This document shows positions 2,051-28,152 of a DNA stretch of 30,482 nt, piece after piece. Source of the DNA: Chlorokybus atmophyticus (taxonomy: Eukaryota > Plantae > Mesostigma and Chlorokybus algae); the NCBI GenBank assembly GCA_009103225.1, contig RHPI01001516.1, positions 1 through 30,482 on the forward strand, in the 5' to 3' direction. The stretch's first letter is position 1; each line of letters starts with the position of its first letter. The notes beneath the pieces are model-generated. The model was not told the origin of the DNA. It made no database searches and was given only the letters and a program-made list of their open reading frames with translations. The position numbers were made by a program, and so were the translations under genes.

Positions 2051-3432
2051 TAATTATCGACAAAATAAGGCATTCTTTAACAACTGAAGGTGATTAATGC
2101 CTAACTGTCGTCATATGTATTTGCATAGCTTGACTACACGCGACTGTCACTGACTTCCAGCATTGTTATGTGCATGTGCCGTGTACATGTACCTGAAATG
2201 TGTACAGTATCTCTCAGTCACTTGCCAAGGCTTGTAGTTCGATTATGTGACTCGAATGCAGTTCTGTTGTATATCATAGGGATGCAAGTATTGATGTGCA
2301 TGAGCATAATGACGATTGACTGAGCTGGTTTAAGATGCACAACACTCAGTCACAAGAGCCTTGTAGCTATGTACACTACCAGCTAAACGGACTACCAACT
2401 GCGCTACAGCTCCTCTCCATCATCGCTNGCGCACAGATGCGGAAAACAACATTATATCGAGCACTAATTCTTGTTTCCTTTGGTCATAAACCATTAGCAA
2501 TAGACAACTATTATAATCGTTCACGCATACTTCCATTCCAGATCGCATCGTACACCAATTTTATGGACAATGATTCAAAGCATCCAACACAGTGGTAGCC
2601 ATCGTGCAGGCTAGTGTTCGATAACCACCCTCATGGTGAATTCGGTGTTGTGTTCCTCGGGAGTCAGGATGACGGCCTGTAATCTCAAGTGTTTGCAATG
2701 CCTTGGGCTGCATGCTCTCAACCTTGTGCATGTGGGCTAGCTTGTCTACCATAGCGGCGACGCGGCAATATGTGTGGCCCAGCAGAAGCAAGGCTACCCT
2801 CGTGAGCGCCGGCCTCCTCGCAGCAAATGCAGAGGAGATGGAAGTGACGGAGCCGTGTTGGGACGGCACAGCGGTGGCGATCCCCACCGCCCCCGCTCAC
2901 CCGTTTGTTGACTGGAGCGTGGCCTTGCTGGTACACGCCAGCATACTGGTCACCTCTCCGTCGTCGTGGCAGACCCTGTGCCCATGCGCGTGTATGAGCC
3001 AACGTGGAAGGATAGACGTGGCAGCTACTCTACCACACCGTACCTTGGGGTGGGAGGAGCGACTCAACGCTTGTGTCATCCAAATAGAGTGATCTTCCCT
3101 AAGTGTCCTCCTTCCCGGATATGCACGGGGTTGTGCCAGTCTGGTGACCCTGGCTAGTCACACGCGTGCGCATGGTGTGCGCAACAGCGTTGTATACAAG
3201 GTTGCCTTGCACTGCACCGCTCCGTGGTGCGATGGCACACCAAGCCTCATAATCATAATGAGGATGCAGGCTAGGGTTCTTGTGAATAACTGTACATGTA
3301 CAATTGTAAGACTTGTGCTTCTCTGTGCATCGGAGATGTTGCTCGCTGTGTGTGGACGACCTGGTCATGCCTCAAATGTGAAAAATAAATGTTGACCAGG
3401 ACAGCGAGCTCCCCTACCCTCTAATTGGCTTC

Positions 3433-4747
3433 TTACTCTTCAGAGTGGGCCAACTGCATATGGCAGCCCTCACACATCCAATTTCTTTTTGGAATCTTGT
3501 CCAATGGTGGCGACAGGCACCATTGGATGTGCCAGCTAGCCATGCAGGTATCACACGGCAGCATGATTGCTTCTCTGTCAGCGCGTGCGCATCCTTCGCA
3601 TCAATGGCTGGCGTCAGGAATAGCTGCCTTGGGGTCCACAACCCTATCGATATTGGGTAGATGGCAAAGGGCATAGTTTTTCATCTGTTCTGCGCATGTT
3701 TTGGCATCACTGCCCTCGAGTAAAAGTACGCCTTTATTGCGCACCCTTTTGACTCTAAGAATCATATTGCTGGCACTTGTGTCCAGCGTGTCCTTGGTTT
3801 AACGGTGGAGATAAATATATTCCCTGCTCCAAATTTTTGCATGCGGGGCTTGTAGAACCCGCTGCGCACTCGAGCGTAGCGCTGAGTGTCTTTGTGTTGT
3901 GCAATGACTAGTTTGTCCATTGCAATCGGTACAGCGCGTTTAAACAATGCTCTAGCAGTGAGCTCTTTTGCAAAGCTTTGCTCATCTTGTAAATCTACAA
4001 CCGCCTCTGCTGGCTTTCTGATAGCAGCTGGAAGCTGTGTGGATGGCGGCCATACAGCAAGAGGTTTGGGCTGTATGCTCCCAATGCAGCATGTCGGCTG
4101 AACCTGTATCCCATCATAATCTATGGCAGCTGGAGATCCCAGTTGATGTCGTCGTGGCTGCGGCAGAAGTTGTGCAATCCCCCTTTCACAGTGTGCACCA
4201 TCCTCTCGGTGAGTCCTATTCAGCTTGGGGATGGTTGCGATGCGTGTGATAATGATCAATTTAGCAAGTTATCACATGTGATCTCTGAAACTCTATGCCT
4301 TTACCTGTTAGCACCTCTGCACATCCTCCAAATCTGCTGAACACTTAGTTGAGGAAGGCCTATGTGATAGTGTTGCTGTCTTTGTTCACAAGTGGGGTTA
4401 CCTCCACCCATTCGCTGAAATGTTCGATTATCACTAGGATGTAGCAATAACCTCTTTTGTTGACGGGTAAATCTCCTGCCAGATTAACTTAACTCCAACA
4501 ATACAACAACCCCTGAATGAGGAGTGGGTGAAGTTGTGGATGCTTCGTGTTGAAGCTAGCCTTCACCTTATCGCACTCCACAATCGTTGTACGATGGCGG
4601 CAATCATTGCTGCCACGCCTGCCCATCAATATGTCGTGGTCACTACGTCGCAATATGTTTTCCCTGCCGGCTGACTAAATATTGGCAACGGCCGTGCACC
4701 TAAGGACACTAATTTAGACTGTCGTGGCTCAGGCCACCTGTAATCTT
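3433..4747 (-). pseudogene. Decayed Ty3/Gypsy integrase + PHD finger, copy 2
   Basis: Same motifs as copy 1. This copy has 9 extra nt that restore the first PHD Cys pair (H*CEGCAR) but include a stop. Confidence 0.88.
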
Positions 4748-4826
4748 GATACAGGGACCTAATAGTAACTTCCGTTACTGTAAGGCCCTTTTAGTTACAA
4801 TTTAGTCTTTAACAGTTAACTATGCC

Positions 4827-5113
4827 TAACTAACAGGCGCCTGTTAGTTACCTATCAGGCCTTAACAGGTGACTTTATATAATTAACAGGCACCTGTTAG
4901 TCACACACCAGGCCTTAACAAATGACTTTGTGTAATTTACAGGCAACTGTTAGTTACACATCAGGCCTTATTAGGTGACTACAACTAATCAACGGGCACC
5001 TGTAAGTTACACATCAGTCTTACTTAGGTGACTCAGCCTATGTGACAGGCACCTGCAGGTTACACACCAGTCCAGCGCAGGCGACTAAGCCTAATTCACA
5101 AGCACCAACTAGG
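4827..5113. repeat. 53-bp degenerate tandem array, copy 2 (candidate subterminal repeats)
   Basis: Same array as 1764-2050 at offset 3063. It begins ~75 bp after the point (~4752, CAGGGACCTAATAGTAAC) where Gypsy integrase similarity stops. Confidence 0.9.
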
Positions 5114-5466
5114 TAATTATCGACAAAATAAGGCATTCTTTAACAACTGAAGGTGACCAATGCCTAACTGTCGTCATATGTATTTGCATAGCTTGACTAC
5201 ACGCGACTGTCACTGACTTCCAGCATTGTTATGTGCCTGTGCTGTGTACATGTACCTGAAATGTGTACAGTGTCTCTCAGTCACTTGCCAAGGCTTGTAG
5301 TTCGATTATGTGACTCGAATGCAGTTCTGTTGTATATCATAGGGATGCAAGTATTGATGTGCATGAGCATAATGACGATTGACTGAGCTGGTTTAAGATG
5401 CACAACACTCAGTCACAAGAGCCTTGTAGCTATGTACACTACCAGCTAAACGGACTACCAACTGCG

Positions 5467-7294
5467 CTACAGCTCCTCTCCATCATCGCTGGTCTCGTCA
5501 TTACGGAACAAAGCACCACGCGCTGGGGCCTGTGGAGGAGACGCCGGAGCTTGCTCTTCCTCCTCAAACGGTTGTGCCAGCCAATCAAATGCCGCTTCTG
5601 CCTCAGCGAGCGGGTCACGAGCTGCTGTCTCTTGCGGCCGGCGCCGATTGGGATCTTTCAGGTATTCGACACAAGATGCAGTGCGGCGTTTCACAAGGGT
5701 GAATGGCTGGAGGGCTGCGTACCGTTGCCTCATCTCCCGCTTCATTGACATGATCATGGTGTTGATTTCGCTGAGGTACTCTTCATGTGTGTCTATGCTG
5801 GCAGCTAGGAGAGGGTCTCCATCCTTGCCCTTTAGGATGCGCTCCACCTGCGTAGTTTACAGGCATGTCTTAGTGGCATCGAAAGCCACTATTCACTGCA
5901 ACGCGTCTGCAAGCCTGTAGTTTGGGGCTACAGCGTTCCTGAATTGCTAATGATGGAGTTCAGAGTGCTCACCGTAAGCAACAGGTATGCGAGGTGGTTG
6001 ACTGTCAGCTGCCGGCGACCAGGTGTAGTGACGGCGTAAGACCAGCATTGCACGATCATTTGCCAGATTATGGGATTGCCCCATTCATGGATGTATCTCC
6101 TCCGCTCCGGGTCTGCAGTGTCGGTCACCTCAAATCTCCGCCATGACTTGTCTGCGACAGTCATACCGACAAGGCATTAGTCACGAAATAGATAGTTCAA
6201 GTTGAGCCTGCACCAGGCTAGAATAGTGCCTGTGACTTACTTTGGAGCGCGTTGCGCATCTGGGCTTTTTGGGTCTCGGGGTCCATTAGGGCGTCGATGT
6301 GCCTGATTGAATCGGTTACAATAGGCGAGATGAGTACGTGTGTATGGAGGCTGAGTAAGAAGGCAGTGTTGCATAGCAGACATGGTGGTGAGGGACCCAA
6401 CTCACTTGCGCTTGTTGCTGTTAAACAGTGTCCACTTGTACTCCTTCTCAAGGACATGCTTGATCTTGGTGACGTTCTCAGACCGGACCTGCGTAGCTTT
6501 CTTCAGGGCGACACTCCAGTGGAAGGGGCACTCCTTGGGAGTCCAGTACACCTCATAGAACTTGGCCGCATCGGCCTCGTCGTCATGGTCGAAGCCAACT
6601 ACCTGTCACGGGCAGGTTGGTCAGTGTCACGGTGCAGTGCGGTCATGAAGCATTCACAGCACCTGACACATGACGTTACGAATAGTGTCCTCCTTGGGAT
6701 AAACGTGGCTCTCTACCCAGTGGCCGTTTATGATTTCAACGACGGCATCTCGCAAATGCTGTCCACAGAAGAACAATCCGTTACACACATACACACAGTG
6801 TCACAGTGTCACACAGTGCTTACCTCGTTGCCAATCTTCCACTTGCTTGGGGAAGGGTTGCTGACGGCCGAGGTTGCCACGTCACGGCCAAATGCGTTTG
6901 GGTTGGGGGTTCCAATCGACCCTCTGCAAGCACAACCACATGAGTCATGCTGCCAGCCATGAAAGATGCAACCCTCACAGTTGCAAAAGAAGAACAACGT
7001 GCACAGTGTATCCAGAACGCATGCAGTGAGTCACTGTGCTAGTCATGATAGAAGCAAGCATCCAAGTTAGAAGTTGAGCAAGAAGCAACGTGCACAGTGC
7101 ATCAAGAACGCATGCAGTCTAGCTTGCCCTTGCGACTGCGGTGTCAGGTGGAGTTGTTGTGATGTGCTGGGCGTTAGCGCGGGGTCTTGCTGCGATTGGT
7201 TGGCGACGGTTGCCTGGTTGAACACTGGGGGCAATGTGGACAACTGGCGCCGACCTCCACGACGAGGTGCACTTACGGATGGACCACGAGGCAT
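5467..7294 (-). CDS. Intact 7-exon orphan gene, 393 aa (weak resemblance to fungal TE-associated DUF6532-like proteins)
   Basis: Exons are 7294-7128, 6923-6824, 6758-6663, 6602-6406, 6302-6241, 6151-5973 and 5847-5467. There is one GC-AG intron (AG|GCAAG) and five GT-AG introns of 60-204 nt. All phases join into one stop-free ORF of 1182 nt (MPRGPS...HLRDAVVEIINGHW...WGNPIIWQMIVQCW...LAYLLLT|VERILKG...GEEL*). Confidence 0.8.
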
Positions 7295-7477
7295 CTCTCC
7301 AACTGATAGTCGGGTGCCGCCTGTTTAGCTGTAAGTGGCGCTGCCGCCTCCAACGCTGCCGCCGCCGGTTGGCCCGCCCGAATGTATGAGGCGCGAAAAC
7401 GAAAATGAGGCGGTTTTGAACGTCTAGAGTCCCGCACTAGAGTCGCACTTGTAGTGCGTCCTTGCTCCTATGGTTGA

Positions 7478-7632
7478 TGGTACGACTTATGCATTCGTGC
7501 CATGCATGCTTCGTACAACCATTGTTACCAATGGTTGTGTCGTAACATTTATGGTACGACAGAGGCATCTCTCGTCCAACCCCAGCGATTGCCGTACAAT
7601 GGCTCTGTCGTACCATCCATGGTACGACAGAG
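7478..7632. promoter_or_regulatory. GTAC-rich hairpin cluster in the divergent intergenic region
   Basis: Six GTAC cores in ~150 bp. Hairpins are 7515-7538 (10-bp stem) and 7603-7632 (14-bp stem, CTCTGTCGTACCAT-CC-ATGGTACGACAGAG). A regulatory role is inferred from position only. Confidence 0.4.
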
Positions 7633-7699
7633 GCATTGCTCGATCAGCCCAAATGGGAGTTAGCATGCACTCACCCAAACACGCTTCATTGATGGCCGG

Positions 7700-10601
7700 A
7701 TGATGGCACGCAGGGGCACCAGGTCGATGACGGGTCGAATGTCAGGCTTGATGGGCCGGGGTTCGACTAAGAGGCGGAGGACTAGGAGTTGGCGGCGGCG
7801 GCGGCGGCGTGGCACATTTTGCGAGAAGTTGTGGTCGTAAGAGTTCAAGCAGCGAAGCCAGCTACTACCGGTCGCCACGTCATGGATCATGGCAGGCGTC
7901 AGCAATGGGGCTGTCCAACATGCATCACCAACATTGGACAAACCAGCAGGCAAGCCATTAAAGACCATCTTCACACAGAGAGCTGCTTGGTGGCTCGCTT
8001 TCTGCAACAGGGAGTGGATCAGGAGCTGCAGTCCTTGGAGCCCCTTGTCAGAACCATGCGGGACCAGTTGCGGCTGTGGGAACAAGCACAAAGGAATGAA
8101 GAGGTACGCTCAACAGTCACATGCATTACCTGGTAAGAGCAATTTGTTTTTTAGCGCAGTCCATGTGATATATGTAGCGTGGCTGCATGCCTCCACTGTT
8201 CACCCATACCCACCCTACAGTCAAGCCGACATTGCGGAAGCAAGAGCAGATAGACAGAGCTGGGCGGCGGTATGTTGTTGCCAATCTCGCTGTGCATGTT
8301 GACTGCAATGTCGGCTCCAATGCATGCCTACCTTTCCATGCTAGGATGTGCGTGAGCGTGCGAAGTCGCGCGCGCGTGCCGAACGAAGTAGGCTGGGTTT
8401 GAGCACAGGAGCGCGTGGCCATTCGTCCGGCATTTAACCAATAGTGCATCAACCAGCAATGACGCAGTCCATGCAATCATTCGTGCATCAACCAGCAATG
8501 CCGCAGGTGATTGTTCGAAGCAACCAACTGATGACGGTGTGACGCAGTTGACTATTGCAATTGCAGTGTCGCAAGCATGCAGCTAACCCACATGTGATTG
8601 GTTGACAGCACCACAGTGCACTAAGTCCTGTTGGAGCTCCTATGCAAGCCTGGATTCAATCCCATCAACTGGTCCTTCAATCCCACTTGCTGATGGGCGC
8701 GGCGGCAATGCGGCATCAGTTTAACATGCATGTTGGCCTGTTGAATCCCGACATGTCCATTGGGGCAGTGGCGCATGATGTGCCCATGGCTCACGAGCTC
8801 CGTGACGAGTCTGCCATCGAGGGTGGCGGGGAGAGTGCAGCTAATACCTTGTCAGCCCCCATGGCTTCCCCGGCTCCATGCAGCCCACGGGCCGTTGTGG
8901 TAAGTCGCTGTCTTTTATGCTCGTGCCTTGGTAATAATGCGTCAGGCACTGCATAAGCTTAAATTCGTCCTTTGCAACATTGTGAGCCATCTTATTCTGG
9001 GTCCTGTATACAGCCCCCCTTGCTGCATGCACAAGTGGTCTCACCTGCAGCTCCTGCTCCCCTCCCAGCCAGAGCGCAACCACCTTCCGCGGCACCAGTC
9101 CTTCGTGCACTGCCATCTCCTCCACGAGCAGCACCGGTGATTGCGGGGCAACAATCCTTCTTGCCGCCACCGGCGAGACCACAGCACAATGCAACAACCG
9201 ATGTGGCTTATGCACCTACCTTACCCCACCCGCTGCAAGTTGAAGCCGGCAGTCTGCCCCAAACTTAGGTACTTTATCCGTCACTGTGACTCTTGCCGTC
9301 CACAGTTGGACACACCATGTGAGTGCTGTATGCGCATGCAGCAGGGGTCACCACCTGCCAGCGAGTCATCAGAGGAGCTGGCCGCAACCCGCATACGGCC
9401 ATCAGTCATGCTAGGTCGCCAGCTTGCCTCATGGGACCACTTCAATGCGCCAACGGATGGTAATTGCTTCTACCATTGTGTATTTCGCGCCAGGCCATCC
9501 ATAGCGCAAAGTGTCCTGGATGATCACAAGTGCCCCAGCTCGAGCAGATTTTGGGCCATGCTGGACACCATGGACGACGACGGCAGGGGGCACACTCTCC
9601 GCAAAATCACCGCCAAGGCTGTCGATGCAGGCTAGCAAAATCCTAGACTTCTGCAGAGCCATTGGTGCCGCGGGAGAGATGGCGCAGTATTACGACAAAC
9701 TGCCTGCGACCATGTTGGCTGATATCAACTGCAACATTGACCTAGCCATGGCCAAGGTGCGACAGATCGTGCGGAGAAAAGATGTGTACGTCGAGCACCT
9801 GCAGATGACCATGTTTGCCAACAAGCTGGGCTTGTTGATTGGCTGCGTGACCGTTCAGCGCGAGCATGGGGAGTGGGTGCCACGGTCCGGCAGCGCAGTT
9901 TGGGTTGAAAATAAAGAAGCCCCCAACTCAGTGCTGGTGGTGGGCAACACTGCTCCTGATGAGCCAGAAGCACACTTTTGGCTGCTCAAGCCTGCAAGCA
10001 CCGAACAGTGGTCGTGGCCTATGCATGAAGTGCCACCGGAGGTAACACACCTGATCGGAGAGTGGCGGAATGGCGTTGCCAATTCCCCGCTACCACCGGC
10101 TGTGACCCAGAGTGCTGCGCCAACGCCTCAGGCCTCGCCTTCGTGTGCTAGGCAAGAAGTAGCCGAGTATTCTGCACATCCTCCCCTCAACCACAGCCAC
10201 ATGCTCGCAATCCCAATTCAGCACCCTCCCTTCCTGCCGCGGAGACTCACTTGCCACCACACTCTGACCATCCGGAGGCATCTCCATCAAGAAGCAGCTG
10301 TAGCTCGCCCTCTCCCTCTAAGCTTGCCACATTGATCCCAGCCTGTCTTGTTGGTAAAGAGATTGATCGAGGTGTCCTGAAAGCTGCGCTGAAAGACAAA
10401 GGCTTCATGCTCGACCTCATGAAGCAACATGAGGTCGTGGAGGAACGGGAGGCAACCAACAAGCGCAAGGCTGTGGAGCAAGAAGATAACGCCTTACCTC
10501 CTCTGAGTGACAGTGCCACGGAGAGCGCCTGCCAGGATGTGCAGGGTGACAAAAAAAAAAAGAAGAAGGTTGTTGGAACAAAGAACGCTGACATGACCTA
10601 A
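7700..10601 (+). pseudogene. Disrupted gene: N-terminal C2HC-like Zn finger, Pro-rich linker, OTU-like cysteine protease (deubiquitinase), basic NLS-like tail
   Basis: CPTCITNIGQTSRQAIKDHLHTESC (~7910-7985) precedes a GAG|GTACG donor at ~8103. The OTU Cys motif APTDGNCFYHCV is at 9447-9482 and the His motif EAHFWLL at ~9967-9987, with YVEHLQMTMFANKLGLLIGCV between them. A +1 frameshift lies near 9630 and another shift near 10170; in-frame TAA/TAG lie near 7770-7785. The tail reads DKKKKKK. The middle exon structure is unresolved. Confidence 0.65.
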
Positions 10602-10710
10602 AAAGGAAAGGCGAGGCATCGTTACAACATTAGAAGAAGCACAGCGCCTTGAAGCCTCACTGGGGCTGACTGTGTGTCCTGAGTAGGCACAGGCGGGTTT
10701 ACAGCGTCAA

Positions 10711-11721
10711 ATGGCTGCTCAGCATCGTCCAGAGAGACAGCCGGTGCGGCACGAGCTGCCTAAGCTCAAAGCACCGACGCGCAGACGCTTTGGGGGGCTG
10801 ACTCGTAGTGCAAAGGAGTTGATCACCCTACAGTACGCCCAAGACGCGCTGCATCACCGCATGCGGCATGCCTCGAGGTGGGTGATGAAAGTTTGCAATA
10901 AGTGGGAGCAAACGCGGGGAATGCGGTCTAAGCAGACCTCTGGGGATTGGCCGTGGTTGGAACCCATACACGATATGGCCATCCGTAGTACGTTGTTGCC
11001 CCTCGCCGTCCTCGATATGATGGTGTTGTTGCTGCCGCAGCACCCCGGCAATGTGCAAGAGCTATCTGCGGAGCAGAACTTCGACCTGCTGCAGCAGATG
11101 TACCTGTCGATGTCGACTAATGCGGGTCGAGATGTGTGCCACTACCTGAGCAAACATACTGGGTGGCAAGTAAAACCATTCGAGCTGTACTTGGCATGCT
11201 TTGGCTGGCAGTGGCTGTATGTCATACGGCACGTCGAGCTGATTCTGTGGAAGCTCGAAGAAAATGACGATGCGGGGGAGTACACGAGTGACGACAGCCA
11301 TGTCGAGGGCCTGGATGAACGCATGCTGGACGAGACCACCAAGACCAGCAGGTGGTGTATGGCGGCAGATGGGCGTCAGGTGATCGAGCAGGCAGTGGAG
11401 CGTTATGCTGCGCCATTCAGATGGGAGTCGCTACGCCTGCGACGCGATAACAGAGTTTGGTGGCAGAGGCAGCTTGCACACCCGCGTGCACCATGTGTGC
11501 TGATTTGTCGCATTGAAGAGCCACCCCCCCCAGCGGATGGGGAGACGCCCTGTTGCAAGAAAGCGATGTGCCATGTCTGCATCATAGCACATCAGAAGAC
11601 TGTGGCAAATAAATCAAAGAATCTACAAGCGTGTCCATTCTGCAAGCAACCTCACCCGTTTTGGTCGCCACGCCTGATGCAAGACGCCAACGTGTCGGCG
11701 GTGATTTGGCCCCCGCCTTGA
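10711..11721 (+). CDS. 336-aa single-exon protein with C-terminal RING-like zinc finger (putative E3 ligase)
   Basis: Open ATG-to-TGA ORF. The C-terminus CVLIC-x12-PCCKKAMCHVCI-x17-CPFC resembles a RING cross-brace pattern with Cys in place of the usual His. The N-terminal ~260 aa are not recognised. Confidence 0.65.
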   Translation: MAAQHRPERQPVRHELPKLKAPTRRRFGGLTRSAKELITLQYAQDALHHRMRHASRWVMKVCNKWEQTRGMRSKQTSGDWPWLEPIHDMAIRSTLLPLAVLDMMVLLLPQHPGNVQELSAEQNFDLLQQMYLSMSTNAGRDVCHYLSKHTGWQVKPFELYLACFGWQWLYVIRHVELILWKLEENDDAGEYTSDDSHVEGLDERMLDETTKTSRWCMAADGRQVIEQAVERYAAPFRWESLRLRRDNRVWWQRQLAHPRAPCVLICRIEEPPPPADGETPCCKKAMCHVCIIAHQKTVANKSKNLQACPFCKQPHPFWSPRLMQDANVSAVIWPPP

Positions 11722-12112
11722 TGCCAATTGTGCATGTATTGTAGTTTTGTGTTGGCTTCCTGTGAACCATGTAGGTACATGTATAGTTGCAGCATGGTGC
11801 ATGGTGCACCAGAGATCTGCTGTTGTTAGAAGCATTGGCTGTACATGTGTATGATGACTGCCCGGCGCATGAGTCAGTGCATGGCTTGCATACCTCGCTG
11901 GTTTAGAGCGTGGTTGACAGCAACAAACTCGAACAGCGCTCTGGGTTCCATGGCATGACAGCACAGTATTACTCTACGATCGTGGTAGTATGCGAGTATC
12001 CTTGTACTGTAGTACCATTAACAGATGGAGTACCATTCATTTTTATGTAGTACCATGCATGGTACTGCAATAGCGTATAAGGTACAGTCGTGCTTCACTT
12101 GAAGTTTGACCC

Positions 12113-12161
12113 ATTTAGGGTTTGTAAGCTGGCAACCCTAAATTGATGCCCATACCCTAAA
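12113..12161. promoter_or_regulatory. Telo-box-like (TTTAGGG/CCCTAAA) motif cluster upstream of the methyltransferase
   Basis: ATTTAGGGTT (12113-12122) and AACCCTAAAT (12134-12143) form an inverted pair, with a third ACCCTAAA at 12154-12161, 45-90 bp before the ATG. Confidence 0.35.
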
Positions 12162-12204
12162 GTCTCGCTCAATTTGTGGGCAGCCGTGCCGATTCCTATT
12201 GTGC

Positions 12205-13931
12205 ATGATGTTGGCGGCAGCAGTTGAATCACCCTTTCCTAGGAGACCATGCTTGGTGTGCCCACAATGCAATGCGTACGTATGTGCCAATGGCCGCAGG
12301 CAGCAAATGCGAGCACACTTGACCGAATGCCAGCGAGTGCAGACAGTGTGCCACGGTATTAGTGCTGCTTGCTGGCATCACACCACACACAATGTCGACG
12401 TGTTTGGCTGCCGCCTCGGCCAAGTGCTGTGCAAGGAACCCGAGTTTTTCCATTGCGTGCAGTGCGTGTGCGAATCGTGCTCGCGCTCATGCTTCGAGTG
12501 GCGAGGGGAACCCATGCGCTTCTTCACATGGACAACACCGGGACATGTGGTTAGTGGACAGGTGGTGGATGCTGTGGAGAATCCACAAGAGTGGACCGCG
12601 ACGTATCACTGCATGTTATGTTGGGCGTATGCTTATCTCATGCATGTTGAAGCTGTTGTCGCATTCAGAGCAGTCTTGCACGGTGTGGGCGTGGGCAGTT
12701 CCATCCCCTGGCCGCTGTAGAGGAGGCAGACCATCGACCGTTGTACAGCGCACTGCATCGGCTGCGGAACGCAGTTAAGTTGGGATGCGAGCAGCTGATC
12801 GGTGTGAGTGTCATGGTGCATTGGCCGCTGGATGGGGAATGGTATGCGGGCGTTGTGGAATCATTCAAGCAAGCGTCAGGTCAGCATCGCTTCGTGGCGT
12901 GCGAGATTGAGGACGCATCATATATGCATGGTGCAATGGAAAATGTCTTTGCAGGGCAGCACCGTATAGTATTCGATGACGGTGATCGACCACAAACCAT
13001 CAACTTCAAAGGGCACAACGTATTCGCGTACACATCAGTTGACGGGGCACGCCATGTTCTGCGCGCCGGAGGGGAGAACGTCAGTCGCAAAGTAAGCCCG
13101 GACGGCATCATTGTTAGTCCCTGGCCAGCACCACGGCCAGCCTTGACCACATACACGCCATTTGACAACAAGCTGGGACGCACACGCAGACCAAGGGCAC
13201 TCGACCTATTCTGCGGCGGTGGCGGTGCCAGTGTCGGTCTATACCACGCAGGCTTTGACGTGACCGGGATGGACATAAGTCCCTCCTCTGAGTACCCGCT
13301 GCCCTTCATACACCGCGATGTATGCACCCTGAGTGCAGGAGAGCTGAGCGAGTACGAGCTCATCTGGGCCAGTCCACCATGCCAGGCCTATTCAGGTGCT
13401 ATCCCGGCACCTCAACGGGCGGCACATGGCACATCCTGGAGACACCAGGATATGATACCGCTCGTCCGACGTCTGCTGCTTGCAAGCCAGGTCAAGTTTG
13501 TGATTGAGAATGTGCCAGGAGCAGCTTCCTCATTCAGACCCAATCTGTCCCTTTGTGGCACGATGTTTGGCCTATCAACTTTCCGACACCGTCTGTTTGA
13601 GACACAGCCAGTGGTAGCTACCCCACCAGCACGCTGCTCGCACGCGGGCAAGGCAGTTGGACTGCTATCGCCGCACCTGTCCGCTAGCGCGAAGAAGACA
13701 ATCGTGACATCAAACGCGCCACAGCAGATGTACCCGGTCTATGGCCTTCCAAGCACCAGGGGCGGCATTGCTGCGTGGCAAACAGCGCTGGGAGTGCCAT
13801 GGATGACCTCGGCCGTTTCCATAGCGAATGCAGTTCCTCCCGCAATGGCGGAGTGCATAGGGCGTCTCATGCTTGAAACAATGGATATGCGCTGTGACTA
13901 CCCTCCTGTGTCATGGAACTATGAGGCTTGA
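12205..13931 (+). CDS. Spliced Cys-rich/Tudor/C5-cytosine DNA methyltransferase (~526 aa)
   Basis: The catalytic domain has ordered C5-MTase motifs: I LDLFCGGGG, II GMDI, IV WASPPCQ, VI ENVPG, VIII RHRLF and X ANAVPP. Removing an in-frame 75-nt GT-AG intron (12880-12954) gives a Tudor-like LIGVSVMVHWPLDGEWYAGVVESFKQASGQHRIVFDDGD. A weaker 71-nt intron (12603-12673) joins it in phase to an upstream Cys-rich exon (CPQC..MRAHLTEC; CVQCVCESC). Confidence 0.9.
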
Positions 13932-14134
13932 GTGTGGTGCACTGTATTGATGCTTAATGCCACACGGCGGACTGATTGTTGAATGTTGCATGGATCATTC
14001 GATTGTGGTGACAGTTGTGCAGTGACAGCTGCCCGGTATTGTACACGTCCACATGCAAAAGTCTTAGCATACGATTAGCAATGCCTAACTGACTGATATG
14101 CTCCAAACTCAGAGTAGTGAGACAAGTACATGTG

Positions 14135-17100
14135 TCACGTGGAAGTGCAGTGAACGTTCACCCAATACTTGCCCTCTTGTACACGGGCGCTGTCCTTGTC
14201 AAACATGGGGAGCAGCTGGACAATGCCTTTTACTTGCTCCAGAGTCACGACATCGAGATGTGGACCGCCTCGACGCTTTTCCCATTCCAGAGCGATGCAC
14301 TTTGTGTCGCTCGTCACATCCAGCTTCGTGTACCAGCGGACAAACACGACCTCCTTCCACACGCGCTCGCCGCTACCACCCCACACCACCACGCGCAGAA
14401 AAAGGAGTGCCTGAGCCCACCACGTCACGTTCACACCGTCCTCATCACCTTCCAACTCAAGTGTAGAGAACCAAGGCCGCCCATGGAACATCCCAGTTGC
14501 GCGCGCCATGCTGACTCCTGATGTCATGTACACCGCTGCGCCTCCGTTCACCACGCGAACAGCACGCCACCCGTCGGCCAACTCCAGTTGTTCCCTCCTC
14601 AACCAGCTGTCCAGGGTGGCAGGCAGCTTGTCGACGAATGGAGTCTTCAAGGCGACTTGGCGGCTACGCGCAGATCCGCTCCAGTACAGGCTGGACTCCC
14701 TCCTTGTCAGTACATCCATCCGTAGTAACTTGTCCGTCTTCTCCATGACATTACAGCACTGCTGCCGCGCCTGCGCCATGACCGAGCGCATCTCGGGATC
14801 CACGACCATGCCATCCTCTCTCACATATTCCGCACAGCTCCATGCCTTCAGGATACGTGCCTGGTAGTCCCGGTTGTTGCCACCACGCGCCCACCGTTTG
14901 ATATTTTGGGCGTGCGTCTGCTCCATGCGGTTGGCGCTGAACCAATCTGGGTGTCCACTGCTGACAATTGCCGGCCCAAAATGAGTGAGCTGATGCATCT
15001 TCTCGATCTTCCAACCTGACTTCTGTGCAGAATATGACGACAGTAGCGGATGCAACACTGCAGCTTTGAAGGCAGCCAGCTCGTTGTCGGCTGTGGTCAG
15101 GGTCTCTNNNNNNNNNNNNNNNNNNNNNNNNNNNNNNNNNNNNNNNNNNNNNNNNNNNNNNNNNNNNNNNNNNNNNNNNNNNNNNNNNNNNNNNNNNNNN
15201 NNNNNNNNNNNNNNNNNNNNNNNNNNNNNNNNNNNNNNNNNNNNNNNNNNNNNNNNNNNNNNNNNNNNNNNNNNNNNNNNNNNNNNNNNNNNNNNNNNNN
15301 NNNNNNNNNNNNNNNNNNNNNNNNNNNNNNNNNNNNNNNNNNNNNNNNNNNNNNNNNNNNNNNNNNNNNNNNNNNNNNNNNNNNNNNNNNNNNNNNNNNN
15401 NNNNNNNNNNNNNNNNNNNNNNNNNNNNNNNNNNNNNNNNNNNNNNNNNNNNNNNNNNNNNNNNNNNNNNNNNNNNNNNNNNNNNNNNNNNNNNNNNNNN
15501 NNNNNNNNNNNNNNNNNNNNNNNNNNNNNNNNNNNNNNNNNNNNNNNNNNNNNNNNNNNNNNNNNNNNNNNNNNNNNNNNNNNNNNNNNNNNNNNNNNNN
15601 NNNNNNNNNNNNNNNNNNNNNNNNNNNNNNNNNNNNNNNNNNNNNNNNNNNNNNNNNNNNNNNNNNNNNNNNNNNNNNNNNNNNNNNNNNNNNNNNNNNN
15701 NNNNNNNNNNNNNNNNNNNNNNNNNNNNNNNNNNNNNNNNNNNNNNNNNNNNNNNNNNNNNNNNNNNNNNNNNNNNNNNNNNNNNNNNNNNNNNNNNNNN
15801 NNNNNNNNNNNNNNNNNNNNNNNNNNNNNNNNNNNNNNNNNNNNNNNNNNNNNNNNNNNNNNNNNNNNNNNNNNNNNNNNNNNNNNNNNNNNNNNNNNNN
15901 NNNNNNNNNNNNNNNNNNNNNNNNNNNNNNNNNNNNNNNNNNNNNNNNNNNNNNNNNNNNNNNNNNNNNNNNNNNNNNNNNNNNNNNNNNNNNNNNNNNN
16001 NNNNNNNNNNNNNNNNNNNNNNNNNNNNNNNNNNNNNNNNNNNNNNTTCACCCAATACTTGCCCTCTTGTACACGGGCGCTGTCCTTGTCAAACATGGGG
16101 AGCAGCTGGACAATGCCTTTTACTTGCTCCAGAGTCACGACATCGAGATGTGGACCGCCTCGACGCTTTTCCCATTCCAGAGCGATGCACTTTGTGTCGC
16201 TCGTCACATCCAGCTTCGTGTACCAGCGGACAAACACGACCTCCTTCCACACGCGCTCGCCGCTACCACCCCACACCACCACGCGCAAAAAAAGGAGTGC
16301 CTGAGCCCACCACGTCACGTTCACACCGTCCTCATCACCTTCCAACTCAAGTGTAGAGAACCAAGGCCGCCCATGGAACATCCCAGTTGCGCGCGCCATG
16401 CTGACTCCTGATGTCATGTACACCGCTGCGCCTCCGTTCACCACGCGAACAGCACGCCACCCGTCGGCCAACTCCATTTGTTCCCTCCTCAACCAGCTGT
16501 CCAGGGTGGCAGGCAGCTTGTCGACGAATGGAGTCTTCAAGGCGACTTGGCGGCTACGCGCAGATTCGCTCCAGTACAGGCTGAACTCCCTCCTTGTCAG
16601 CACATCCATCCGTAGCAACTTGTCCGTCTTCTCCATGACATTACAGCACTGCTGCCGCGCCTGCGCCATGACCGAGCGCATCTCGGGATCCACGACCATG
16701 CCATCCTCTCTCACATATTCCGCACAGCTCCATGCCTTCAGGATACGTGCCTGGTAGTCCCGGTTGTTGCCACCACGCGCCCACCGTTTGATATTTTGGG
16801 CGTGCGTCTGCTCCATGCGGTTGGCGCTGAACCAATCTGGGTGTCCACTGCTGACAATTGCCGGCCCAAAATGAGTGAACTGATGCATCTTCTCGATCTT
16901 CCAACCTGACTTCTGTGCAGAATATGACGACAGTAGCGGATGCAACACTGCAGCTTTGAAGGTAGCCAGCTCGTTGTCGGCTGTGGTCAGGGTCTCTCCT
17001 GTGTGTTCATGCGCCTTGAGCAACTTCTTGTTCCACTGGGCAAGCGATGCGGCAGCAATGGTGAAGAAATCGTTGCCCTCACTGTCGAGCAGCAAACCGT

Positions 17101-19232
17101 CTGCGAGGACCGGCAGCAGCTGCAGCACCGCCACTTTCTCTACCACCTGAAAGGAGTGGTCGGACAGGAAGAAATCTACTGTGCTTGTGGGTGCCTTGAA
17201 GTGCGAAACCCGCAGAGTCGTCTTGCATGCATTCAGCCTGTGCACATCTGCTCGTGAGCACGTGTTGTTGGCTTTGGTGTTGCTTTTGTGTTCAACACAA
17301 AAGCAACACCAAAGACGTGCCTGGCCTGCAGAATCTGTCTCGTGGATGGACGCATTCGTTCCTTCGCGGCGTCGTACACATCACCAAGCATGCGTGGTCA
17401 ATGATGCCTCTCAGCACATGCATTGCGTCAGGGGCAAGACGAGAGTAGCAGTTAGCTCCCGGCACCCGCGACGGTCGCCAACCCCACAGTGCATTCTGTT
17501 GCCAAACCACATTGCCTGGTTTCACGGAAAGCCATTCATCCTCACGAATGTCGATAATTTGACCATTACCTCCTCGACCTGCATGGAGTGCTGCTCTTTG
17601 AAAGCCTTGGCTGTCTGGCTGTCCTAACACCGCTATGCAGATCCGCCCGCAGCTGACGTATTGCTGGTGTGTAGAAGGCCTCGGTTCTCAATTCCCGGTC
17701 CTCATCCATCTCCAACAGATCTGTTTAGTGACGTGACAAACATCGCAAGGATGTCGTGTTTGGTTGCCCGACACAGTGCGTGCGAGTGTGGCAGTCTCGT
17801 ACAACACGACAAACTCAGATGTTCCATTGACAGCATCCTCCATGCACTGTTTGCTGGCAGGCTGCATCCGGTTACAATCATTCATGCCCACTACCTACGC
17901 AAATCGCTAATGTAGTTGGCAAGCGTGGGAAACACACGACGCTCGATGCCATTCGGGTCGATGAGCTGCAGACCTTCCCAACTCGCCCGCTTCACATCCC
18001 CTAACACTACATTCAAAGCGTCATGAAAAATCTCACGTTTTCGAATGGAGAACGATTCCTTGCCCTGCGCCCAGGTGGGATGCCCGGCCACTGCATGAAC
18101 CACCGGCAGAAGCGCTATCATAACAACCCCCATGTTGCTAGCATACATGTCCCAACTATAGTTGGCAAGCGATGCCATCAGAGGGTAGCCAGAGCGCTTG
18201 CCCGCGCTGTCCAGCGTGGTCTTGTCACTGTAAAGAATGGCAGGCGCCAAGTAGGACGCTTCCCCCACCTCTCTCCTCAAATCCACCTCCACATCCTTCC
18301 ACCAATCACCCGTGGAAGGAGGAGGCCAAAGCTGTGCTCGTCACCAGTGTACTGGAGATTGAAGCCATTGGCGGCATGTGGATTGCCATACAACCGCGCG
18401 AGCCATACCTNAAACCCTGCCTGTGAATGTTCAACGCTTTTACAAGAGTCTATCTTGCCTACAAGTATTCAAACGATGCCTGCTTGAAAATTCAGTGGTG
18501 TAATACATGTGATGGTCACAGCACTACACCATACAGGTTGAATGTACAGCTCCACTGCAAGTGAGTAAATGCCCCACATANAAACAAGAGCATTACTTAC
18601 TATGCTGGCCTCAGAATAGATACTGCATCGATACTGCATTAGGTATTGCATTTCACAGACCTTGGCCGGCATATATGTGACGCAGATGTCCTGATCCTCA
18701 GGGTCTCCAGGCTTGCGCAGGTCAGCCGTCACGTAGTTCTGATACGGCAGCACACTCGCATGTGCATATGTGACATGGCTCTGATGNCCTCGACATGCAG
18801 GAGCCAGGGACGCCGTATTCTAGGCTATTCACCCCTGTTTTTATTAACTATTCAGATCAAACAGTCTGAAAATTCAGGAATCGGGGGGGCTCAGAATTAC
18901 CGGTGTTTGGCTACAACAACCTCACACGCCTGGTAGCTGAAGACATGGTCAACGGCATCNAAGCACATGCACCGCACACCGTGAACACACCTCAGACTGA
19001 GAGAAAGCAATCGTGGTCCGGAGGTAGCTGGCCACATGCACACACCGGTCTCCCACTGGAGTCTTCCGTCAGGAAGTGTGCATTTCGGATGCACTTGATG
19101 ATCCGCCCCATGTCGGAGGCCGACAGGCCTTGGCCGTTGTTGCACTGCACGAATGCCACTGCAAGAGCATGCTCCGAGCCATACCACCTGGATTCCGACG
19201 CGTGCGAAGGGACGCCTCCACTTCCATGTTGG
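14135..19232 (-). mobile_element. Plavaka-family (PF18759-like) DDE DNA transposase gene, spliced, frameshifted, fragmented by assembly joins
   Basis: The pieces read HALAVAFVQCNNGQGLSASDMGRIIKCI (~19046-19232), DICVTYMPAK (18661-18786) and VWLARLYGNP..STGDWWKDVE..PAILYSDKT..GYPLMASLAN..IALLP..REIFHDALNVVL..RRVFPTLANYISD (18408 down to ~17900). They continue HPCDVCHV..ELRT, LAPDAMHVLRG (D-x2-H), KIEKMHQFTHFGPAIVSSG..ANRMEQTHAQNIK, and a C-terminal VFVRWY..DVVTLEQVKGIVQLLP domain. Frameshifts lie near 18320, 17720 and 17615. Confidence 0.88.
14157..16997. repeat. 951-bp duplication (14157-15107 = 16047-16997) flanking a 939-N scaffold gap (15108-16046)
   Basis: The two copies of the transposase 3' end differ by about 8 substitutions counted by eye, and each abuts the gap. 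This is typical of overlapping contig ends from two alleles or copies. Confidence 0.95.
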
Positions 19233-21202
19233 NTGTCAGCAAGGAAGACTTTCAGGCTTCTTTAGGCGTGCTGCGTGAACCCTGTATCATGGCCAAGCAG
19301 CATAGGATGCCGTTCCCGGCATCTTCTTCTAGCAGTCAACATCTAAGCGAGCTGGTACACATGGATGTTTGCGGGCCCGTGCGCTTTGTGGCGAAGCGAG
19401 GGGTAAGGTACTTTGCAACTTTCCTCGACGACTACGGTAAGCTGTCCATCATCTACCCTCTATCCCTGAAATTGGAAGTTGAAGGAGCTGTGCGCAACGT
19501 CGTGACATTGCTGGAGACACAATGAAGCAAGAAAATGAAAGCAATGCGCAGTAATCGAGAAGGGGAGTACATCAACGCCCAGCTTTGGGACTTCTTCGCC
19601 AGCAAAGGCATAAGGCATGAGACAACATCGCCCTACACTCCACAGCAAAACGAAGCGGCTGAACGCCTGAACCGGACCCTGTTAGAGCATGATGTGCGGG
19701 CTATGCTCGACGATTGCAAGTTGGAGGACTCAATGTGGAAGGAGGCTCCTCACAGCCTATCACATCCGCAANTATCGTACTGTAATGGACGCTGGCCGAC
19801 ATACAGCTTGATCTGCTTGCACACCCTGCTGCTAATAATGTGCATGTAGACCGAGCTACGTGTGGCAAAGCGCATGTGGCAATATGGACAAAGGACTCCC
19901 ATATCTCACTACTAACGTCGACACAGGTGTAGCCAATGTAACCTGCATCATATCCAGCAACACGCACACCCGCCGCCGCCGCCGCCGCCACCGCCACCAC
20001 CACCGCTACCGCTACCCTTGCATGCCCGAGGCGGGAAACTTGGCCGCCATGCACTGGCTCCGTCGTACCATTATAATGGTACGATCGAGCCATTGCACAT
20101 CCAGGGTGAGTCTCTGTATATATATATACACATATATATTCTAATTGAACCGTTTCAATGGTACGAAGATGCCTTTGCCAAAAGGTATAGCATGGCATTG
20201 TACAAAGGTACCATTGAAATGGTACCTTTGTACAATGGGAATGGCAGTTCGTACCATTGACAACTCTGGCAATGTCAGTCCCCCTGCGCATGAAAACACC
20301 ATTGATAGCTCCGCCAAGCTATGCCCTTACAGGGGCGTGATGCGGAGGGTATGTGGCAATTGGTGGATCGTTGGCGGCGCTGCCAGGGGCGTAGTGGGCA
20401 TTGTGGTCGAGGTCCGGGATGAATTCCATGTTCGCACAGGGCGGGCNAAAAGCAGCTACGGCACAAGTTTGGAGCCAGTTAGCAAGAAGGGAGTCTTCGT
20501 TGGCTACGAACCAGGCTCAAATGCGTACATGACTTTGCTTGAAGAGAGCCACAAGATCATTTTCAGCAGAGAGGTGGTGTTCCACGAGGGTTTACGAACA
20601 GAAGCGGGCTTCTTTTCCAATGGATAAAGATGAGGCACATCCACAAGCCGTTCCTGAGAGAGTGGAGGCTTCAGGCAAGGCAGACATCATTACAGAGGAC
20701 TTTCAAATGCCGCCTGAAAGGTGTTCAGGCGAGCAACAGCAGGCGTCTGTTCGTCGCTATCTTGAGAGGGAGAGATAAGGTCCTGACTTCTACCATAAGG
20801 CACTTTTAGGCGTGTGTTAAAAGGGAGACAGCACAAAGGAGCCAAGTACATACCAGGAGGCACTGTAAGCACTTGATGCAGAGCAGTGGCAGCAAGCCAT
20901 AGACGAGGGAATCGTGTTACTCAATGCTCACAAAACCTGGGTATTATAGAAGCTACCTTCAGGCGAGAAACCAATCCCTGTCCAGTGAGTCCTCAAGGTG
21001 AAGAGGAACGGTCTTCAAGGTGAAGAAAGACGGTCAAGACAACATGGAGCGTAACAAGGCAAGGCTGGTTGCAAAGGGCTTCTTGCGATAAGAGGGCGTG
21101 GACTTCAATGAGGTCTTCACGCCTGCAACATTCCGCACACTGCTTGCCCTGATTGCGGCTGAAGACTTGGCGCTTCACCACCTTGACGTGAAGATTGCCT
21201 TC
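18897..21202 (+). pseudogene. Decayed Ty1/Copia pol (gag-pre-integrase, rve integrase, integrase C-terminus, start of RVT_2 reverse transcriptase) in three N-bounded pieces
   Basis: 18897-18959 reads FGYNNLTRLVAEDMVNGI. 19234-19771 reads VSKEDF..EPCIMAKQHRMPF..ELVHMDVCGP..FLDDYGKLS..RSNREGEY..TTSPYTPQQNEAAERLNRTL. 20448-21202 reads [75 protein letters not shown]. Several stops and frameshifts; truncated at the N at 21203. Confidence 0.93.
19773..20446. other. Unassigned N-bounded segment with long palindromes, (CCG/CCA)n and (TA)n microsatellites
   Basis: 22-bp palindrome at 20063-20084, a 20-bp-stem hairpin at 20196-20237, a CCG/CCA run at ~19970-20015 and a TA run at ~20117-20140. It interrupts the Copia pol between the Ns at 19772 and 20447. 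Confidence 0.6.
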
Positions 21203-21203
21203 N

Positions 21204-28152
<6,949 letters not shown>

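Follow-up and report, generated by a model that had tools for sequence, protein, structure and literature searches.

The 30,482-nucleotide stretch of Chlorokybus atmophyticus DNA analysed here (contig RHPI01001516.1 of assembly GCA_009103225.1, referred to at its full length as the window) contains, between position 4646 and approximately position 19200, what is probably a single copy of a large Plavaka-type (CACTA/EnSpm-related) cut-and-paste transposon that was amplified recently and has a C5 cytosine DNA methyltransferase gene among its cargo. A multicopy Plavaka-type transposon with C5 methylase cargo is real; the copy in the window is damaged, with frame breaks in the transposase and in an OTU-like protease gene, and it is partly mis-assembled. 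An earlier interpretation of the letters themselves (the sequence-only reading) had proposed one cut-and-paste element of more than 14 kb, of which the Plavaka element is upheld but the length is not: the 14.5-14.6 kb seen in the window probably shrinks to ca. 12.7 kb once a gap-plus-duplicate of 1,890 bp, itself probably an artefact, has been removed.

In the proposed arrangement, the element would terminate in a short inverted motif, CGTCGCAA(T), that is, CGTCGCAA..TTGCGACG, with the transposase gene being read inward from the right end and the accessory genes converging on it from the left. The accessory set would consist of an OTU-like protease, a RING-like protein and a gene that combines a Cys-rich part, a plant-type Tudor domain and a compact C5 methyltransferase of the phage/giant-virus type. 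An array of inverted 11-mers with a 53-bp period just inside the left end would most likely offer binding sites to the transposase or to an accessory protein, and the cargo may be carried along since it alters how the element or its targets are methylated or packaged as chromatin. The coordinates of all features are collected in Table 1.

Transposase, repeated unit and element borders

The identity of the element is given by its transposase. The open reading frame (ORF) at 17891-18292 on the minus strand matches Pfam family PF18759 (E = 3e-19; profile positions 107-226 of 325), its score of 69.9 bits lying well above the cut-off of 26.3, and the Plavaka transposase that the sequence-only reading had placed at the right end in inward orientation is thereby confirmed. 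A HMMER search of 1.8 billion representatives returned only 144 relatives, the nearest being a 134-amino-acid metagenome fragment (P0121) with 72% identity, while the others reach at most 49% and mostly lie between 25 and 40%. A PCDVC motif at ca. 17760 and, downstream of it, MHVLRGIIDH lie in a region that is split over frames. The transposase gene also contains, between two of its frame pieces, a near-perfect palindrome of 43 bp (97.7%; 17272-17314), which could be intron content or the footprint of a small insertion.

The methylase gene and the transposase gene are physically linked, their stop codons being separated by 200 bp within a single unbroken contig, and the N-free stretch 2429-15107 contains the left end, the array, the OTU-like, RING-like and methylase genes and the tail of the transposase. 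The linkage is extended across an assembly gap because the transposase tail that precedes the gap is 99.2% identical to the tail that is joined to the Plavaka domain; the two tails belong to direct duplicates (14157-15107 and 16047-16997) that differ at 8 of 951 positions, five of these differences being non-synonymous in the minus-strand ORF.

Evidence for amplification comes from Logan contigs of four public runs, aligned to positions 3600-9599. In run X2, the flank (3600-4599) is represented by one contig per place at a depth of 5-7, whereas 368 contigs, in all identity bands, cover the region from the 4600-4799 bin to 9599. Depth inside the element is roughly 20-fold above that of the flank, contig depth being a sign of repetition rather than a copy number and the count of distinct contigs being the firmer measure. 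Variant sites at 4707 and 4733 are each present in 12-14 different contigs, contigs that match the element perfectly have depths of 135-156, and a deletion variant joins 5306 to 7072. Run X1, which bears a different organism label, covers 4673-9590 and none of the flank, and short near-identical pieces are found in two further runs. Because of the contig jump in X2, and of the presence of the element without its flank in X1, a young repeated unit begins between 4600 and 4707 and continues unbroken through the array into the OTU-like gene. The block is thus copied as a unit, at least across the left 5 kb, and its sharp left border lies within about 100 bp of the start at 4752 given in the sequence-only reading.

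The left junction reads CAC TA/CGTCGCAATATG, with the slash at the border. The terminal motif CGTCGCAAT, with at most one mismatch allowed, occurs at only four sites in the window: at the left end, in a duplicate of it at 1583, inside Copia coding sequence, and at a minus-strand site ending at 19200. The last of these is the sole minus-strand near-match in the window and is located between the 5' region of the transposase and a Copia-like fragment. Of the terminal repeats and target-site duplication expected at the two ends, a short inverted motif is present at both, but no duplication was found (TA at the left, CG at the right). Beyond 9 bp, no similarity between the two ends rises above background, and the exact left-end pattern had no match in metagenome contigs.

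Two other pairs of ends were considered but not retained. Ends of the CACTA type, with CACTAC at 4641 and GTAGTG at 20396, would delimit an element of 15.7 kb; they were discarded because the CAC TAC at 19907 continues the Copia frame and the integrase resumes directly after 20396 (SH3_retrovirus profile). The clusters of ATGGTACGA palindromes at 7477-7627 and 20063-20257 were likewise rejected as true ends, the number and depth of contigs having already risen near 4.65-4.7 kb.

As the sequence-only reading had noted, a repeat array sits at the left end where an older integrase breaks off, and it is the end of the element at which this retroelement is cut. The array, detected at 4783-5106 by Tandem Repeats Finder (period 53, 75-79% matches), lies ca. 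90-140 bp inside the left end and contains TAACAGGTGAC-like motifs that alternate in orientation every 26-27 bp. This motif has 20 matches in the window against 6 expected, all of which fall in the array or in its duplicate at 1670-1916. The array has a twin at 1720-2043, since positions 1-2427 duplicate 3054-5490.

The accessory genes

The ORF of the methylase gene (12741-13931) scores 26.4 bits against PF00145, for which the cut-off is 22, retains motifs I (FCGGGG), IV (PPCQ) and VI (ENV), and is intact over 396 codons; one relative (P0004) could be aligned end to end over the whole methylase domain with 40% identity. The N-terminus of the protein matches a solved chain of 66 residues, 7de9_A, over 38 residues (E = 1.4e-5), a structure that we take for a Tudor domain from a plant protein of the PDS5 type, and there are weak matches to the tandem Tudor of 53BP1 in the same place, although Pfam gives no Tudor match there. 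The DNA-methylation writer with a reader domain that had been read from the sequence is in agreement with the match above the PF00145 cut-off and with that to 7de9_A. A candidate GT-AG intron of 92 nucleotides (12683-12774) would join the preceding Cys-rich ORF in frame to the methylase, as judged from the sequence.

The closest relatives of the methylase (37-48% identity) come from a phage contig and from giant-virus-like contigs that are dense and lack introns; none of these relatives lies beside a Plavaka gene. A methylase search in viral contigs found nothing. On two of the relatives' contigs (L001 and L002, the contigs of P0008 and P0006), the neighbours are a SNF2-RING protein, a RING protein, kinases and a type II topoisomerase, and several of the nearest relatives carry a methyl-CpG-binding (MBD) domain in place of the Tudor domain.

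In the OTU-like gene, the PTDGNCFYHC loop can be matched to the catalytic loops of nairovirus and other OTU structures (E = 0.03-2), 9 of the 17 weak structure matches being OTU domains and the best having E = 0.03. An EAHFW motif follows ca. 160 codons after this Cys loop, and the frameshift, one extra base near 9625, separates the Cys and His parts. The RING-like ORF matches the RING of TRIM30 in the PDB (E = 0.16) and falls near RING clusters of a language-model atlas (0.86-0.88), which are to be read as leads only; a RING search in viral contigs gave no homologues. The ubiquitin writer/eraser pair of the sequence-only reading thus rests on motif matches below threshold (OTU E = 0.03, RING E = 0.16, no Pfam match) and is putative.

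The fourth gene of that reading, an orphan at 6252-6962, is unsupported and is not counted as a gene here: the ORF has no Pfam match, and its protein-likeness (atlas recognition, 976) is very low and far below that of real proteins. The four packed genes without a housekeeping gene among them therefore stand in part. Profile scans gave no housekeeping family on any ORF scanned in the window, but the orphan falls away, the OTU-like gene is frame-broken, and neither the OTU-like nor the RING-like ORF has a match at family threshold.

The left interior has further features of note. The ATGGTACGA motif has 13 matches in the window against 1.9 expected, clustered at the two places given above. Directly downstream of the left palindromes and of the (GGC)n run, the ORF 7789-8136 encodes a tail of coiled-coil-like character together with a Cys/His motif (CPTC...H...H), without a Pfam match; it may either supply the OTU-like gene with its first exon or form a small gene of its own. 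The GC content by codon position did not separate real from spurious ORFs, and a scan of the intergenic spacer for bacterial promoters and terminators was empty, which is irrelevant for a eukaryote.

Table 1. Features of the putative Plavaka element and of its assembly in the window (.: no strand).
Feature	Position	Strand	Basis or remark
TA dinucleotide just outside the left terminus, putative target dinucleotide	4644..4645	.	read from sequence
Left terminal motif CGTCGCAAT	4646..4654	+	exact CGTCGCAA match at 4646; within the 4600-4799 depth-jump bin
Subterminal array, about six 53-bp units, each with an inverted pair of TAACAGGTGAC-like motifs	4733..5106	.	Tandem Repeats Finder, motif count
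Interior, including the former orphan ORF 6252-6962	5107..7440	.	no Pfam match; multicopy like the rest of the left part
ATGGTACGA palindrome cluster, then (GGC)n at 7790-7810	7477..7627	.	motif count; inverted repeats
OTU-like cysteine-protease gene, broken by one extra base near 9625	9141..10335	+	DGNCFYHC loop; EAHFW motif
336-amino-acid ORF with C-terminal RING-like Cys/His cluster	10711..11721	+	TRIM30 RING match; intact
Cys-rich ORF, possible first exon of the methylase gene	12199..12720	+	translation
Tudor-like domain and compact C5 cytosine DNA methyltransferase, intact ORF	12741..13931	+	PF00145; 7de9_A match
Transposase 3' end, copy A	14135..15107	-	ORF; faces the methylase tail to tail at a distance of ca. 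200 bp
Assembly gap, 939 N	15108..16046	.	between 951-bp direct duplicates
Transposase C-terminal 399-amino-acid ORF (copy A' and upstream part)	16047..17245	-	ORF
Transposase, central and N-terminal parts spread over three frames, Plavaka domain at 17891-18292	17292..18753	-	PF18759
Candidate right terminal motif, reverse complement CGTCGGAAT	19192..19200	-	8/9 positions match the left motif

Assembly of the locus and competing explanations

Because the two sides of the gap repeat each other, the right side is not the continuation of the left, and an in-frame reading through the gap is meaningless; the ORF of 1,036 codons that runs through the Ns is artefactual and owes its existence to a gap whose length is a multiple of three. 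The 8 differences in 951 positions look like those between two copies of a repeat family or between two alleles. When the duplicate is collapsed, the C-terminal ORF of the transposase runs from 17245 to 16047 and then from 14156 to 14135, and the element becomes shorter by the 1,890 bp, although a genuine internal duplication may exist in some copies. A second duplication concerns the left end: positions 1-2427 repeat 3054-5490 at 98.6%, with a single N (2428) marking the precise end of the first copy and 625 unrelated bases between the two. The first copy carries an identical junction of flank and element, with similar divergence in flank and element, and is either one insertion assembled twice (a haplotype or repeat copy set in tandem) or a segmental duplication.

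Apart from the one long run of Ns (15108-16046), the window contains nine single Ns, eight of which are found within 18411-21203 at distances of 170-760 bp, one of them (19233) inside an ORF; these eight may reflect not gaps but bases called ambiguously within a collapsed repeat. Positions 21204-28150 are occupied by a perfect (GA)n run (6,947 bp; 3,473 copies, 100% matches). The single N immediately before it interrupts a Copia-like reverse transcriptase within a motif (DVKIAF), and the run looks like an artefact of assembly or gap filling rather than real sequence.

The flanks of the element are themselves retroelement remains. To the left of 4646, a degenerate integrase on the minus strand extends up to ca. 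4645, with a core that is recognisable by eye, a weak rve match (4363-4488, E = 0.012) and, within the region 3414-4645, a C-terminal PHD finger (PF00628, E = 2.6e-6). In chromoviruses, it is a chromodomain that occupies the position held here by the PHD finger, and the latter would be a reader-domain swap in a long terminal repeat element. To the right of 19200, a Copia-like integrase and reverse transcriptase are encoded on the plus strand. The expectation that two halves of one Gypsy integrase flank the element is thus contradicted, the minus-strand integrase with its PHD finger on the left having as its counterpart a plus-strand Copia-like integrase on the right. Either the assembly fused the left part of one copy to the right part of another, or the locus was rearranged. 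The Copia integrase is further interrupted by a TA-flanked insert of 478 bp (19915-20391), one end of which is ACGTCGACA; the insert contains a (CCG)n run and ATGGTACGA palindromes, features that are also present at 7477-7810 in the large element, and is probably a non-autonomous relative of the latter.

It is from this assembly that the least probable of the alternatives arises, namely that short-read contigs from different repeat copies were scaffolded into a chimera, the gene order and linkage of which match no single element. A gap between 951-bp duplicates that diverge by 0.8%, the duplication of 3054-5490 in a copy that stops exactly at a single N, the eight single Ns between 18411 and 21203, the mismatched flanks and the 6.9-kb (GA)n run from 21204 would all be explained by such a chimera. 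However, the N-free stretch 2429-15107 already includes everything from the left end to the transposase tail, the X2 contigs match perfectly where tested, and the tail before the gap is nearly identical to that joined to the Plavaka domain, and we therefore regard a chimera of this kind as very unlikely.

A number of other observations weigh against the reading of 4646 to ca. 19200 as one transposon. At its borders, the right end rests on a single 8/9 match (the chance of a CGTCGCAAT-like site in that 500-bp zone being ca. 0.02-0.03) and is followed by CG rather than TA, so that no target-site duplication is seen. The termini are CG..CG, compared with the CA..TG that is usual for the Plavaka/CMCT clade with its target-site duplications of 2-5 bp, and the left and right flanks are unrelated, non-contiguous retroelement fragments, so that the locus as assembled is no simple insertion. 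The copy evidence covers 3600-9599 only, a part that ends before the RING-like, methylase and transposase genes. The transposase gene is distributed among three frames. One break at the least (near 18328, as compared with L004, the DNA of the P0121 fragment) is a genuine frameshift, and others lie near 17891 and 17688; some of the breaks may be very short introns, but that at 18328 is not an intron. Its C-terminal 399 amino acids have no detectable homologues. Among the cargo, the OTU-like gene has neither a Pfam match (PF02338 family) nor homologues in the searches, the RING-like ORF has no Pfam match and remains below every family threshold, and the single-sequence AlphaFold models of the two (mean confidence, pLDDT, of 46 for the OTU part and 38 for the RING-like ORF) are too poor for a fold search. 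Finally, no RNA run contains the stretch.

Part of this evidence would also be accounted for if a Plavaka transposon, or its transposase alone, had landed beside pre-existing methylase, RING and OTU genes of host or viral origin, the larger repeat then being a segmental duplication or a repeat island. The missing target-site duplication, the mismatched flanks and the end of the copy evidence at 9.6 kb, before the region 9.6-19.2 kb, are in agreement with such a history, as are the closest methylase relatives, which occur on phage and giant-virus-like contigs without a Plavaka gene, and the Plavaka-flanked repeat clusters of intron-poor genes in Amoebidium. It is nevertheless made improbable by the uniform contig depth, with perfect-match contigs that begin at the terminal motif, cross the array and reach as far as the beginning of the OTU-like gene, by the inverted terminal motif at both ends and by the distance of 200 bp between the methylase and the transposase tail, all of which favor a single transposon that carries these genes.

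Even within a single transposon, the cargo ORFs may be decaying passengers without function, a captured fragment of a giant virus or of the host that is merely tolerated. The frameshift in the OTU-like gene, the orphan ORF that does not resemble a protein, the lack of homologues of the OTU-like and RING-like products in the searches and the result for the RNA runs are what such decay would leave. On the other hand, the methylase ORF is intact over its full length with its catalytic motifs, as is the RING-like ORF over 336 codons, and the element family is young; we consider functionless cargo to be a possible, if on balance unlikely, explanation.

Relation to known elements and meaning

C5 methylases in retrotransposons are already known, as are N6-adenine (6mA) methylases, SET domains, 2-oxoglutarate (2OG) oxygenases and TET/JBP enzymes in large DNA transposons. 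The nearest parallel is offered by the large Plavaka elements of the red algae Bostrychia moritziana and Chondrus crispus, which measure 17-19 kb, contain three accessory genes and inverted-repeat arrays, and make up one third of the Bostrychia genome (bioRxiv 10.1101/2025.02.11.637652). Their cargo comprises PAG1, the function of which is unknown, PAG2 (an N6-adenine methylase with a SET domain) and PAG3 (a ParB-like protein with a 2OG oxygenase) (bioRxiv 10.1101/2025.02.11.637652). The Chlorokybus element resembles them in its Plavaka transposase, its size of more than 10 kb, its massive amplification, its several accessory genes, here predicted to modify DNA or chromatin, and its tandem arrays of inverted repeats. 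It differs in its cargo (Tudor plus C5 methylase, OTU-like and RING-like), in its length (12.7-14.6 kb versus 17-19 kb) and in the terminal motif CGTCGCAA, and neither the PAG2 (PF01555 and SET) nor the PAG3 (ParB-like and 2OG oxygenase) families were found on any ORF scanned in the window.

Fungal Plavaka elements (PlavakaA/B), together with other transposons, carry TET/JBP dioxygenases (PMC12730594). They have a single accessory gene and the termini TGT..ACA or CATCA..TGATG, and target duplications of 2 bp or 2-3 bp are reported for the family (PMC12730594). Common to these and to the Chlorokybus element are the Plavaka transposase and a cargo that acts on cytosine methylation, which for Chlorokybus is a prediction; however, the fungal cargo removes 5-methylcytosine (5mC), whereas that of Chlorokybus would write it. 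In the retrotransposons SymbioLINE/DIRS-Dnmt3 and KnitGypsy-Dnmt3, a eukaryotic Dnmt3-type domain is situated within the Pol polyprotein (PMC5890265). These are likewise multicopy mobile elements that encode their own C5 cytosine methyltransferase, but the Chlorokybus element is a DNA transposon in which a separate gene encodes a compact methylase of the phage/giant-virus type fused to a Tudor domain. The giant Plavaka repeats of Amoebidium, which reach up to 50 kb and are rich in tyrosine recombinases, with no methylase cargo described (PMC11244446), share with it the intron-poor gene clusters flanked by a Plavaka transposase and the suspected lateral origin of the cargo.

In the literature searched, a C5 methylase fused to a Tudor domain is not described from any cut-and-paste element, whether Plavaka or another, which agrees with the sequence-only reading as to the novelty of the combination, but the concept is not new, Plavaka elements that carry modifiers having been published. 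We suggest, tentatively and with the odds set rather against it, that these copies belong to an active family of DNA transposons that writes 5mC, in which the Tudor domain would aim a virus-derived methylase at a histone mark, with an OTU/RING module alongside, and would thereby set the chromatin of the element or of its targets.

If true, such a family would be the DNA-transposon counterpart of the DNMT retrotransposons and a mirror image of the fungal TET/JBP Plavaka elements. Mobile elements with epigenetic enzymes of their own show the interplay of genomic parasites and host silencing, and the Chlorokybus element, if active, would allow the writing of methylation by a transposon, instead of its erasure or evasion, to be put to the test, and would also illustrate the passage of genes from giant viruses or phages into the transposons of eukaryotes.

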